In this document: in pieces, positions 22,119 through 35,149 of the stretch
Layout: the number at the start of each line of letters is the position of its first letter
Numbering within the stretch: position 1 is the stretch's first letter
From: Macrostomum lignano
Taxonomy: Eukaryota
Assembly: GCA_002269645.1 (NCBI GenBank)
Contig: NIVC01000831.1
Coordinates: 1-64,000 of the forward strand
Direction of reading: 5' to 3'
Length of the DNA stretch: 64,000 nt
Program-made: the position numbers and the translations under genes
The notes under the pieces: generated by a model
Database searches by the model: none
Seen by the model: only the letters and a program-made list of their open reading frames with translations
Told to the model about the DNA's origin: nothing

Positions 22119-25100
22119 ATGTACACGCAGTACAAGTGAGTTCTGGCGAGTGTCCAAGCTTACCAGTAGATCTCTATGAATGAAAATCAGTGTTGAGGTT
22201 TGACTAAGTAACACTGCTCTAAGATCTGTAGTTTGTTTAATTGTATGTACTTTTTATAATACAAACACGTGTGCTCTGCATATAGCTGTTTCGTTTGGCA
22301 TTTAATTTCATTTTTTTCTGCTGGCCTTTTTAGTACTAACCAAAACTTGTAACAGTAGTATTCATAACAGCAATAATATAATGTAGCCATTGTGTTTTTG
22401 CTTGCTTCTAACCTAAAAATGAATTAATTATGATAGCTCAGCATGACGCTTGATTGATTAATTGAGACTTACAATAAGTACATACTCTCATTTTTTGATT
22501 CCCGATTCTCCTTCTATTCCATCAAGAGAGCGCATGATGCCCGGTGCATGCGGAGACGGCGTTGACCCATCGGTGGTGTCCTACCTAGAGGAGGGCTACA
22601 AGAAGCTGCAGTCCGACCCCAAGTGCAAGTCCCTGCTAAAGCGTCACCTGACCAAGGATGTGCTTGAGAAGCTCAAGAACAAGAAAACGTCGTTTGGTTC
22701 GACTCTAAAGGATGTGGTGCAGTCTGGTGAGTTTTTTGAGATCAAACTTTTCATTTGTTTTTGTCTGATCTTAGTTTAAATGTAGTTAACCGATTTTTTT
22801 TCCAGGCGTGGAGAACCTGGACTCAGGCGTCGGCGTGTACGCCCCGGACGCGGAAGCGTACTCGGTGTTCGCCGACCTGTTCGACCCGATCATCGAGGAG
22901 TACCACGGCGGCTTCAAGCGCACCGACCGGCACCCGCCGTGCACGCTGGGAGACGCCAGCGAGTTCGGAGACGTGGACCCGGAGGGAAAGTACGTGGTGT
23001 CCACCAGGATCCGGTGCGGCAGGTCGCTGAGAAAGTTCCCGTTCAACCCGAACATGACGGAGGGGCACTACAAGGAGATGGAGGATCTGGTGTCGGGCAC
23101 TCTGAAGGGCATGACGGGAGAGCTGAAGGGCACGTTCTACCCGCTGACCGGGATGACGAAGGAGGTGCAGCAGCAGCTGATTGACGACCACTTCCTGTTC
23201 AAGGAGGGCGACCGGTTCCTGCAGAAGGCGAACGCGTGCCGCTACTGGCCGACGGGCAGGGGCATCTTCCACAACGACAGCAAGACGTTCCTGGTGTGGG
23301 TGGGAGAGGAGGACCACATGCGGATCATCTCGATGCAGAAGGGCGGCAGCATCAGGGAGGTGTACGGCAGGCTGGTGAAGGCGGTGAACGAGATCGAGAA
23401 GCGGATGGAGTTCAGCCACGATGACCGGCTGGGCTTCCTGACGTTCTGTCCGACGAACCTGGGCACCACGATCCGCGCCTCGGTGCACATCAAGCTGCCG
23501 CGGCTGTCGGCGGGAGGCCAGGAGGCCCTGCAGCGGGTGGCCGACCGGTTCCAGCTGCAGGTGCGCGGGTCCGCAGGCGAGCACTCGGAGGCGGTGGGAG
23601 GCCTGTACGACATCTCGAACAAGGAGCGCATGGGCCTGACGGAGTTCGAGGCCGTCGGCAAGATGTACCGCGGCATCGCCGAGCTCATCAAGATGGAGAA
23701 GGCGCTGGAGCGGGGCGTCGACCCGGAGGTGGTGAAGTACGTTGAGGACGGGTTCGCCAAGCTGCAGGCCAGCGACTCGTGCCACTCGCTGCTGAAGAAG
23801 CACCTCACCAAGGAGGTGGTGGACCGGCTGAAGAACCTCAGCACGCCGTCCTTCGGCTCCACGCTCAAGGATGTCATTCAGTCAGGTGATATTTTACTCT
23901 GAATTGGAATTCATATAGTAAATTTTTTTGTTATTTACCTATGGCAATATGGGATGAGCACAGTAAGAAGTTTGTTGGCATTAACGTAGGAAATGAAAGT
24001 TAGCTGAAATTTTCATAATAAGGAAATGTGCCTCTTCACTGCCAATCAAATCTAACCTAAGATTGGACGCCAAGAGCTTACAATTACACTTTTCGTAAAT
24101 TAGGATTCTATATAATAATTGCTTCAACGCTTCTTAATCCGAGGTAGTTGTAGTCTAGTGGGTAGAGCATCGGACTCACGACGGGGGTTCGATTCTCGAC
24201 CCACTGGGAACAATTTGTGTGCTTGAGCAAGACACTTAACTCTACATTGCTTCAGTTCACCCTGCTGTAAAATTGGTGCCAGCATGTGAGAGTCGCCCCT
24301 GAAAGTCGCCATACCCCAGTGAGTCGCCCGTTAGAGTCGCCCCACGTCCCCAGTGAGAGTCGCCCCACGTCCCCAGTGAGAGTCGCCCCACATCCCCAGT
24401 GAGTGTCGCCCCACATCCCCAGTGAGAGTCGCCCCACATCCCCAGTGAGTGCCGCCCCACATCCCCAGTGAGTGTCGCCCCACATTCCCAGTGAGAGTCG
24501 CCCCACATCCCCAGTGAGAGTCGCCCCACATCCCCAGTGAGTGTCGCCCCACATCCCCAGTGAGAGTCGCCCCACATCCCCAGTGAGAGTCGCCCCACAT
24601 CCCCAGTGAGAGTCGCCCCTCATTCCCAGTGAGAGTCGTCCCACATTCCCAGTGAGAGTCGCCCCACATTCCCAGTGAGAGTCGCCCCACATCCCCAGTG
24701 AGAGTCGCCCCACATTCCCAGTGAGAGTCGTCCCACATTCCCAGTGAGAGTCGCCCCACATCCCCAGTGAGAGTCGTCCCACATTCCCAGTGAGAGTCGC
24801 CCCACATTCCCAGTGAGAGTCGCCCCACATTCCCAGTGAGAGTCGCCCCACATTCCCAGTGAGAGTCGTCCCACATTCCCAGTGAGAGTCGTCCCACATT
24901 CCCAGTGAGAGTCGCCCCACATTCCCAGTGAGAGTCGCCCCACATCCCCAGTGAGAGTCGCCCCACATTCCCAGTGAGAGTCGTCCCACATTCCCAGTGA
25001 GAGTCGTCCCACATTCCCAGTGAGAGTCGCCCCACATTCCCAGTGAGAGTCGCCCCACATCCCCAGTGAGAGTCGCTCCACGTCCCCAGTGAGAGTCGCC

Positions 25101-34100: not shown

Positions 34101-35149
34101 GTTGTGATGGTGACCCCATTTAAGAGAAACAGACGTAAACGTTTCCATTGAATAATCTGTCTGCACGACGGTCTGTCTGTGTGTCTGTGTGTCTGTCACA
34201 TCTGTTACAATTTACAATTCCACAAAATACCCCAGGCGTTGAGAACCTGGACTCGGGCGTCGGCGTGTACGCCCCGGACGCGGAGGCGTACTCGGTGTTC
34301 GCTGACCTGTTCGACCCGATCATCGAGGAGTACCACGGCGGCTTCAAGCGCACCGACCGGCACCCGCCGTGCACGCTGGGAGACGCCAGCGAGTTCGGAG
34401 ACGTGGACCCGGAGGGAAAGTACGTGGTATCCACCAGGATCCGGTGCGGCAGGTCGCTGAGAAAGTTCCCGTTCAACCCGAACATGACGGAGGGGCACTA
34501 CAAGGAGATGGAGGATCTGGTGTCGGGCACTCTGAAGGGCATGACGGGAGAGCTGAAGGGCACGTTCTACCCGCTGACCGGGATGACGAAGGAGGTGCAG
34601 CAGCAGCTGATTGACGACCACTTCCTGTTCAAGGAGGGCGACCGGTTCCTGCAGAAGGCGAACGCGTGCCGCTACTGGCCTACGGGCAGGGGCATCTTCC
34701 ACAACGACAGCAAGACGTTCCTGGTGTGGGTGGGAGAGGAGGACCACATGCGGATCATCTCGATGCAGAAGGGCGGCAGCATCAGGGAGGTGTACGGCAG
34801 GCTGGTGAAGGCGGTGAACGAGATCGAGAAGCGGATGGAGTTCAGCCACGATGACCGGCTGGGCTTCCTGACGTTCTGTCCGACGAACCTGGGCACCACG
34901 ATCCGCGCCTCGGTGCACATCAAGCTGCCGCGGCTGTCGGCGGGAGGCCAGGAGGCCCTGCAGCGGGTGGCCGACCGGTTCCAGCTGCAGGTGCGCGGGT
35001 CCGCAGGCGAGCACTCGGAGGCCGTGGGAGGCCTGTACGACATCTCAAACAAGGAGCGCATGGGCCTGACGGAGTTCGAGGCCGTCGGCAAGATGTACCG
35101 CGGCATCGGCGAGCTCATCAAGATGGAGAAAGAACTCGAGGCGAAGTGA
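22119..35149 (+). CDS. Four-domain arginine (phosphagen) kinase, about 1456 aa, 6 exons
   Basis: Exons 22119-22135, 22527-22726, 22806-23885, 26819-27898, 30142-31221, 34236-35149; all GT-AG and in frame, total 4371 nt. Each domain has [48 protein letters not shown]. The 17-nt first exon is the least certain part. Confidence 0.9.
22806..23885 (+). CDS. Arginine kinase exon 3 (1080 nt: C-terminal part of domain 1 plus N-terminal part of domain 2)
   Basis: tccag|GC GTG acceptor and CAG TCA G|gtgata donor; phase 1 at both ends. Confidence 0.93.
24143..24283 (+). mobile_element. tRNA-derived SINE with CORE-like domain, arginine kinase intron 3
   Basis: A box tagtctagtgggtagag, B box ggttcgattc, then gtgtgcttgagcaagacacttaac...ttcagttcaccctgctgtaaaattgg, which resembles the CORE consensus as I recall it. 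Confidence 0.65.
24285..25906. repeat. 23-bp minisatellite (tcccagtgagagtcgccccacat)n
   Basis: Direct tandem array; 23-aa periodicity in the minus-strand ORFs. Confidence 0.96.
25945..26652 (-). mobile_element. Degenerate, internally deleted mariner relic
   Basis: Frameshifted fragments [35 protein letters not shown]; terminal sequence cgaggggcactacgaaagtttc preceded by TA at 26653-26654 on the minus strand. Confidence 0.85.
26819..27898 (+). CDS. Arginine kinase exon 4 (1080 nt: domain 2 C-part plus domain 3 N-part)
   Basis: cttcccag|GC GTG acceptor and TCA G|gtgagt donor; near-identical to exons 3 and 5. Confidence 0.93.
28420..29580. repeat. Compound minisatellite with a 72-bp higher-order unit (26+23+23 bp), arginine kinase intron 4
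   Basis: Three related subunits starting tgatgtgtct recur in fixed order; 72-nt periodicity seen (for example 28681 vs 28753). Confidence 0.92.
30142..31221 (+). CDS. Arginine kinase exon 5 (1080 nt: domain 3 C-part plus domain 4 N-part)
   Basis: cttcccag|GC GTA acceptor and TCA G|gtgagt donor. Confidence 0.93.
32325..34125. repeat. 15/16-bp array (tgtgatatttcgggt)n with inverted copies at its left end, arginine kinase intron 5
   Basis: Main array about 32420-34105; inverted units aaccgaaatatcacaaacccgaaatatca at about 32345-32375. Confidence 0.9.
34236..35149 (+). CDS. Arginine kinase terminal exon 6 (domain 4 C-part, ends KELEAK*)
   Basis: cccag|GC GTT acceptor; the only repeat copy with an in-exon stop codon. 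Confidence 0.93.

Follow-up and report, generated by a model that had tools for sequence, protein, structure and literature searches.

When several arginine kinase (AK)-like reading frames lie in a row on one strand, are they neighbouring genes or the pieces of a single one? The question is raised by a 64,000-nt stretch of Macrostomum lignano DNA (assembly GCA_002269645.1, contig NIVC01000831.1, positions 1 to 64,000 of the forward strand; hereafter the window, meaning this whole stretch at its full length), in which four such frames occupy the + strand between 22.5 and 35.2 kb. A first-pass annotation, made from the letters alone, had read them as one gene for a four-domain enzyme rather than as four genes. 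Our analysis favors that interpretation: with a probability that we put at roughly 80%, and judging from sequence, one M. lignano gene with five coding exons encodes a 1448-aa, 162-kDa polypeptide composed of four complete AK domains arranged head-to-tail, with a linker of about 3 residues.

The gene runs along the + strand from window position 22534 to 35149, and its five coding exons are joined across canonical GT-AG introns, all of them in phase 1. Splicing yields a coding sequence (CDS) of 4347 nt, corresponding to a predicted product of 162.2 kDa with an isoelectric point of 6.3. The parts of the gene are as follows, in window coordinates, with a slash marking splice sites here and below.

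22534-22726, + strand: coding exon 1, 193 nt; ATG at 22534, N-terminal 64 aa of domain 1, ending ...DVVQS-G; donor TCTG/gtgagt, phase 1
22727-22805, + strand: intron 1, 79 nt, GT-AG, phase 1
22806-23885, + strand: repeated exon copy 1, 1080 nt; C-terminal 304 aa of domain 1, the ALERG junction and the N-terminal 56 aa of domain 2
23886-26818, + strand: intron 2, 2933 nt; 23-nt minisatellite at 24333-25906, 68 copies
26819-27898, + strand: repeated exon copy 2, 1080 nt; remainder of domain 2 and beginning of domain 3
27899-30141, + strand: intron 3, 2243 nt; 72-nt (23/26-nt sub-unit) minisatellite at 28435-29566
30142-31221, + strand: repeated exon copy 3, 1080 nt; remainder of domain 3 and beginning of domain 4
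31222-34235, + strand: intron 4, 3014 nt; 15-nt minisatellite at 32415-34108
34236-35149, + strand: last coding exon, 914 nt; C-terminal 304 aa of domain 4, ending ...MEKELEAK; TGA at 35147-35149

Each of the three internal exons is preceded by a pyrimidine tract and cag/GC and is followed by /gtgagt or, for copy 1, by /gtgata (the borders of copy 1 read ttttccag/GC at the acceptor and TCAG/gtgata at the donor). All three end in ...VIQS-G/gt (...CAGTCAG/gt), the Gly codon of QSG/VENLD being split after its first base, which gives phase 1. We found no ATG between the upstream stop codon and the acceptor in any of the three, each 1080-nt exon reads through ...MEKALERG-VDPEVV... into the next domain, and a stop codon (TGA) occurs in the last exon only. 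The first-pass annotation had described copies 1-3 as 1080-nt exons with no start of their own, each built from the C-terminal ~300 aa of one domain, KALERG and the first ~57 aa of the next domain up to a QSG/gt donor, with a single stop at the end of the gene. These borders proved exact at the positions listed, and the two parts measure 304 aa and 56 aa. Its size of about 1456 aa needed correction, because the supported CDS begins at the ATG at 22534, which is also the start used by the CDS of the public entry PAA48667.1 on a related contig described below. The difference goes back to an extra 5′ candidate mini-exon at 22119-22136 (ATGTACACGCAGTACAAG/gtgagt), which is present in the window sequence; we did not adopt it, as its conservation is no better than that of the non-coding flank and the GenBank CDS does without it.

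The spliced product contains four copies each of the N-terminal helical domain PF02807 and the C-terminal catalytic domain PF00217 (Pfam; E 1.9e-129 and 1.1e-303), in agreement with the proposal of four contiguous domains with almost no linker. Membership of the AK group is recognized by a reactive cysteine motif, CP(S/T)NLGT, by conserved active-site Arg and Glu residues, and by an arginine-type guanidino-specificity loop that has no deletion and reads ...NLDSGVG(I/V)Y.... The catalytic motifs, ERMG among them, occur once per domain in all four domains, each of which also has the arginine-type specificity loop LDSGVGVY. The positions of the active-site motifs, in which we take the key residues to be R126, E225, R229, C271, R280, R309 and E314 by Limulus AK numbering, are invariant in an alignment with 27 two-domain homologues. 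The Macrostomum protein is 64-70% identical to solved arthropod AKs, and in an AlphaFold model covering the first two domains (predicted local distance difference test score, pLDDT, 89) the modelled domains match monomeric arthropod AK crystal structures with template modelling (TM) scores of 0.96-0.97 and root-mean-square deviations of 1.2-2 Å. At the modelled domain junction, a C-terminal helix (344-367) is followed by three non-helical residues and an N-terminal helix (371-386). All four domains are probably active arginine kinases, and from what is known of the family each would reversibly transfer phosphate between ATP and arginine.

Sister loci and the public record

A search with the full-length product returned PAA48667.1 (M. 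lignano BOX15_Mlig028863g1; UniProt A0A267DIW5, "Arginine kinase"), a protein of the same length, 1448 aa, and the same exon structure, from which the window protein differs at three residues (A5G, A356G, G716A). Its contig, NIVC01004087.1 (L004), aligns collinearly with window 17.6-37.3 kb, with identities of 95-98%. The three long introns recur on it, the four exon copies occupy matching places, and the minisatellites are shared but form shorter arrays; the gene spans 10.2 kb there versus 12.6 kb in the window, and the lengths of the minisatellite arrays make up most of this difference. Judged by this collinearity, the window is another haplotype, homeologue or assembly of an already annotated locus. 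PAA48667.1 has been deposited in GenBank/UniProt since the 2017 genome annotation, so the sequence is not new, and its record is an automatic "hypothetical protein" entry. The M. lignano annotation was built from RNA sequencing (RNA-seq) with STAR, StringTie, TACO and TransDecoder, and gene boundaries were trimmed with trans-splice and poly(A) reads (PMC5730564). The RNA-seq-based model thus gives indirect transcript support for the four-domain open reading frame (ORF), and its agreement with the window, together with the missing starts and acceptor-to-donor borders of the internal copies, bears out the claim that the four AK-like ORFs are one gene.

The genome of M. lignano is repeat-rich, partly duplicated and redundant (PMC5730564), and the same gene family occurs on further contigs, which fall into two types. 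Type A loci, with exons that are ~99% identical, comprise the window (4 domains, encoded by an array of 3 repeated exons plus a terminal exon), L004 (4) and NIVC01000953.1 (L006; PAA74349.1, 1808 aa), which has 5 domains and flanks 98-99% identical to the window. L006 contains an extra exon and an extra intron of the i2 type, giving the intron order i2′, i1, i2, i3. The orthologues of window intron 2 are L004 intron 1 and L006 intron 2; it is unrelated to window introns 3 and 4. Type B loci, which are mutually syntenic, comprise NIVC01001373.1 (L008; PAA68746.1) with 1 unit, NIVC01001442.1 (L005; PAA67925.1) with 6 units, and NIVC01001443.1 (L007) with 7 units. One exon of L005 is 1079 nt long, so that the GenBank model (1843 aa) skips part of a unit; six of the units of L007 are perfectly periodic at 1852 nt, with introns that are 100% identical.

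Type B differs from type A at 87% nucleotide identity, with a synonymous divergence (dS) of 0.47 and a nonsynonymous divergence (dN) of 0.06. Both types share the 1080-nt exon that joins the back of one domain to the front of the next, the phase-1 intron and the junction MEKALE[RQ]GVDPEVV, which places the origin of the fused exon before the split between them. Downstream of the three type B loci (L005, L007, L008) lies a RABL6-like Ras/Roc gene, as in the window from 52060 onward, and by their sequences types A and B look like paralogous chromosome segments. In the window, this GTPase gene has its first exon at 52060-52400 and an acidic C-terminal exon at 56021-56764 (+ strand).

The type B loci also have an extra upstream exon, MGNLFKGRGGQRGQARPADAQPVSG/gtaagt, which is 100% conserved (L005 10997-11071, L007 4471-4545, L008 10001-10075). 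The protein start that it encodes, MGNLFKGRGG..., resembles Arf-type N-myristoylation signals, and such a Met-Gly-Asn leader would suggest membrane or ciliary anchoring. Searching the window with tblastn, we found no MGN-type leader exon.

An older ab initio model covering window 12071-46040, UniProt A0A1I8I6C1 (1912 aa), links reverse-transcriptase/transposon fragments (12071-17119), three AK domains and ankyrin-repeat exons (43535-43795 and 45108-46040), joining the AK gene to the ankyrin exons via a donor that overlaps the AK stop codon; we rejected it as a probably chimeric prediction. A consensus-like donor, GCGAA/GTGAGC (window 35140-35152, with the GT at 35146-35147), does overlap the stop of the last exon. 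Within one assembly, models of 675, 774, 1912 and 2047 aa are given for this gene family. In the window, an ankyrin-repeat gene follows the AK gene in the same orientation at a distance of 8-11 kb, and several crustacean gene models (P0123, P0125, P0318 and P0364; Palaemon, Trinorchestia, Macrobrachium and Hyalella) combine 2-3 AK domains with ankyrin repeats in one protein.

Sequence evidence for homogenization of the exon copies, and a proposed origin

The repeated exons are close to identical without being fully so: identity is 98.99-99.4%, with pairwise differences at 6-10 of 1080 positions (8 between copies 1 and 2, 6 between copies 2 and 3), and the first 895 nt of the last exon are 99% identical to them. 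The encoded cassettes are nearly the same protein, differing by 1 aa. Fourteen of the 15 variable sites among the copies are synonymous, compared with 23% expected from random changes (P = 1.8e-8); every copy has therefore been maintained as coding sequence. Within the array, dN/dS is 0-0.04 and dS is 0.024-0.036, more than 10 times lower than between types A and B.

This likeness is confined to the exons, stopping 4-31 nt past their borders, and the three long introns have no similarity to one another and carry a distinct minisatellite each (units of 23 nt, 72 nt and 15 nt). Orthologous introns of different haplotypes are 92-99% identical, while introns within the array are unrelated. Introns thus evolve too slowly for the units to be recent duplicates, and homogenization of the exons must have come later than the units themselves. 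Across copies and loci the variable sites are arranged as a mosaic: window copy 3 (W_3) shares a 5′ signature A/T/G with L006_2 and L006_4, for instance, and L006 carries the 3′ signatures CTT/ACT/ACC in reshuffled form, a pattern that recombination within exons would produce. Copies are far more alike within the array than across paralogous arrays, and the homogenized tracts are bounded by diverged flanks, as in a tandem exon array under concerted evolution; the pattern fits exon-confined gene conversion plus unequal crossing-over. Type B introns are 94-100% alike among themselves, which appears to indicate either recent duplication of units or, in L007, a partial assembly artefact.

Exon 1, the non-repeated part of the same gene, matches the corresponding part of the repeated exons at only 65% (aa) and 68% (nt) identity, with a dS of ~0.9. 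The two also differ in GC content at third codon positions (GC3), which reaches 0.95 across the repeated exons (0.946 for their stretch homologous to exon 1) versus 0.73 in exon 1 (Fisher p = 0.0026); the single-domain AK gene has a GC3 of 0.72 and neighbouring genes 0.56-0.60. Because exon 1 shares its mRNA with the repeated exons, expression level alone does not explain the gap, and GC-biased gene conversion is a reasonable, unproven explanation for the high GC3.

The closest single-domain relative in our searches is another M. lignano AK (P0042, 80% identity), whose gene (L002) has one 78-nt intron (TCG G/gtaagt ... tcatag/GC ATC) at the same position and in the same phase as window intron 1. 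The proposed ancestor would accordingly resemble it: a single-domain AK gene of two exons, separated by one phase-1 intron after ...QSG. A copy arising in tandem would then have been fused to it through loss of the stop codon, the spacer and the start codon, so that the end of one gene (...MEKELEAK and its stop) was joined to the start of the next, forming the present junction and the 1080-nt back-plus-front exon. The low identity of exon 1 to the repeats indicates that this first fusion is old. The 1080-nt exon and its intron would subsequently have been multiplied by unequal crossing-over, the exons being kept near-identical by exon-confined gene conversion or unequal recombination as the introns diverged fully, and the same recombination would alter the number of units, giving 4, 4 and 5 in type A and 1, 6 and 7 in type B.

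The number of domains in one polypeptide

The step from this gene anatomy to a protein is one of interpretation: we infer that all four units are present in one mRNA, that the product is enzymatically active and that there is a physiological reason for its architecture. Several points weigh against the account as a whole. The exons are ~99% identical and have identical splice junctions, so short reads cannot place all three repeats in one molecule, and skipping any repeated exon leaves the frame intact. Protein searches with domain 1 plus the junction, and with a 248-aa query across the junction and splice site, brought up neither the M. lignano multi-domain proteins nor a spliced complementary DNA contig from this species, an absence that carries no information because the index also missed a 100% match. 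In the supplements of Macrostomum expression papers, neither these genes nor "arginine kinase" are listed. Assembly errors may account for part of the variation in copy number between contigs, especially in L007, which is periodic, and L008, where a collapse is possible. In the structural model, the inter-domain orientation is uncertain (predicted TM score 0.57), and the predicted arrangement does not superpose on the solved two-domain enzymes, Anthopleura AK and Schistosoma TK (taurocyamine kinase; TM 0.46-0.48). Finally, the high GC3 could also be explained by codon selection instead of biased conversion.

The best-surviving alternative, which we consider unlikely, accepts the gene as real and holds that the four-domain protein is not its main product, exon skipping giving mostly one-, two- and three-domain isoforms from an array of interchangeable cassettes. 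Every such product would be in frame and made of whole domains, since the repeated exons are of phase 1-1 and a multiple of 3 nt in length; the near-identical exon ends keep short-read junctions from separating neighbouring from skipping splices, and the syntenic single-domain version at the paralogous locus L008 suggests that one domain is viable. Against skipping stand internal acceptors and donors that are all strong and canonical, purifying selection on every copy, and a transcript-based annotation that has the full 1448-aa ORF here and one of 1808 aa at the 5-unit locus; a choice between cassettes that differ by 1 aa would also be purposeless.

Less probable still is that the copy number itself is an artefact, the assembly having expanded or mis-joined a shorter array so that the true gene has fewer domains. 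An expansion would yield identical units, whereas each copy in the window has its own synonymous variants, its own unrelated intron and a different minisatellite, and the same order of exon-i1-exon-i2-exon-i3-exon is found on the independent contig L004, which is 2-5% different in non-coding sequence. These observations outweigh what favors the artefact, namely a very repeat-rich and redundant genome (PMC5730564), the disagreement of related contigs over the number of units (4, 4, 5 and 1, 6, 7) and the suspiciously perfect array of L007. Least probable of all is that the four frames, 2-3 kb apart and each about one AK in length, represent individual genes or single-domain AK duplicates that are decaying into pseudogenes. 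The sequence already contradicts this: start codons are missing from the internal copies, whose borders coincide exactly with an acceptor and a donor and which join the rear part of one domain to the front part of the following one in a circularly shifted unit, free of stops and frameshifts, and 14 of 15 variants are synonymous.

With a single four-domain gene as the preferred reading, a broader and more tentative proposal can be made, to which we give somewhat less than even odds. The M. lignano AK loci may constitute a "catalytic-domain VNTR" (variable number of tandem repeats), in which recombination in the 1080-nt exon array would vary the number of domains per polypeptide from 1 to 7 between homeologous chromosomes of one inbred line and exon-confined, GC-biased conversion would keep the domains identical. 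All length variants would be expressed, at ~160-280 kDa they would include the largest contiguous phosphagen kinases known, and the type with the MGN leader may be anchored to membranes or cilia.

Elsewhere in the window, a mariner/Mos1-type transposase at 1465-2532 (+ strand) has an intact 355-aa ORF with HTH_48, Transposase_1 and DDE_3 domains. Long minisatellites with units of 15-72 nt are found throughout, including those at ~18.5-19.2, 50.8-53.7 and 60.6-62.3 kb, and create spurious long ORFs on both strands, for example at 24252-25964 (- strand, 570 aa) and 33069-34199 (- strand, 376 aa). Antisense ORFs of 270-355 aa also lie over the AK exons (22823-23803, 26797-27816, 30072-31139 and 34205-35014, - strand); they are a by-product of extremely biased codon use on the sense strand (GC3 0.95) and should not be taken as evidence of antisense genes.

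Other contiguous phosphagen kinases and the meaning of the locus

Enzyme evolution through gene duplication and fusion has a textbook example in the contiguous phosphagen kinases, among which two-domain AKs are known from a sea anemone and from clams. Among solved structures, the best PDB matches of the Macrostomum product are the two-domain AK of Anthopleura japonicus (4RF6-4RF9; E 4e-222) and the two-domain TK of Schistosoma mansoni (4WO8; E 1e-202). In the two-domain AKs (Anthopleura, bivalves) and the trematode TKs (Schistosoma, Clonorchis; PMC3836730), complete domains are contiguous in one polypeptide, as they are in Macrostomum, where the 4347-nt spliced ORF holds four and at least two complete kinase domains in one ORF define the group. 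Both domains of trematode two-domain TKs are active in the cases characterized (PMC3836730). These enzymes differ from the Macrostomum product in having two domains rather than four and in being only 43-54% identical to it, so the fusion is independent; their domains have also diverged from each other, whereas those of Macrostomum are at least 99% identical.

The flagellar creatine kinase (CK) of sea-urchin sperm is a "contiguous CK trimer" with three domains (PMC3080659). It belongs to the CK lineage and is ~40% identical to the Macrostomum AK. The title of a reference cited in the same paper (PMC3080659) points to myristoylation of the sea-urchin enzyme; the Macrostomum protein, whose domains are AK-type, starts with MMPGAC..., without Gly at position 2, and shares neither the lineage nor the Met-Gly signal of flagellar CK. 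Three-domain AK/TK-like proteins of nemerteans and Nematostella (hits P0122, P0289, P0302 and P0320) belong to distant AK lineages with 47-53% identity, and three-domain AK-like proteins also occur in a pearl oyster.

For larger numbers of domains, our database survey combined a word-index search with a scan across 1.84 billion representative proteins. The database check for other four-domain proteins that the first-pass annotation had proposed brought up many, from krill, a foraminiferan, a chrysophyte, a dinoflagellate and environmental contigs. The proteins from Mallomonas, Polykrikos, Nonionella stella, krill (Meganyctiphanes CAL4062935.1, partial, 1592 aa) and dozens of environmental (ENA/JGI) contigs have 4 or 5 near-full domains in which the CPxNLG motif is intact. 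Two of the environmental proteins are encoded by single uninterrupted ORFs, of 4347 and 5496 nt.

L009 (ENA metagenome contig), 3640-7986: 4-domain phosphagen kinase, 1448 aa, uninterrupted ORF
L010 (ENA metagenome contig), 6001-11496: 5-domain phosphagen kinase, 1831 aa, uninterrupted ORF

Given these uninterrupted ORFs, polypeptides with such an architecture clearly exist. The two contigs are 201 kb and 1.4 Mb long, and the neighbouring genes have no Pfam matches. Compared with Macrostomum, the uncharacterized 4- and 5-domain proteins show 28-49% identity, longer linkers (10-35 aa) and diverged domains, and those examined have no introns. Since the other multi-domain proteins are 28-54% identical to the Macrostomum domains, which are at least 99% identical among themselves, the fusions are independent.

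The survey also changes how unusual the architecture should be considered. The first-pass annotation had called a four-domain animal AK rare, a claim that has to be toned down: there are 5-, 6- and 7-unit versions within M. lignano itself, and the four-domain architecture has many unpublished parallels in public data, where 4- and 5-domain phosphagen kinases are numerous. As for the novelty that it left open, the protein was already in GenBank/UniProt, and the literature that we searched described neither a phosphagen kinase beyond three domains nor these Macrostomum genes; for "arginine kinase" together with Macrostomum, it yielded no more than an incidental mention, in a 2007 subtraction library. 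What the analysis adds is the link to the database entry, the variation in domain number from 1 to 7 among homologous loci, and the sequence evidence of exon-confined homogenization.

The locus is a clean example of exon-limited concerted evolution in which the non-repeated exon 1 of the same gene serves as an internal control, and, set in a recently duplicated genome, it could serve in studies of domain-number polymorphism, of gene conversion tracts and of GC bias in conversion. It also illustrates that short-read annotation of such exon arrays is unreliable. For the enzyme family, a four-domain AK and its 5- to 7-unit sister loci would extend the series in the literature, which consists of two domains (AK, TK) and three domains (flagellar CK). 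Chaining domains would raise the number of catalytic sites that each mRNA and each molecule supplies, in an enzyme that is large and diffuses slowly, and versions with 1 to 7 domains of essentially one catalytic unit would be well suited to tests of kinetics, cooperativity, diffusion and localization.

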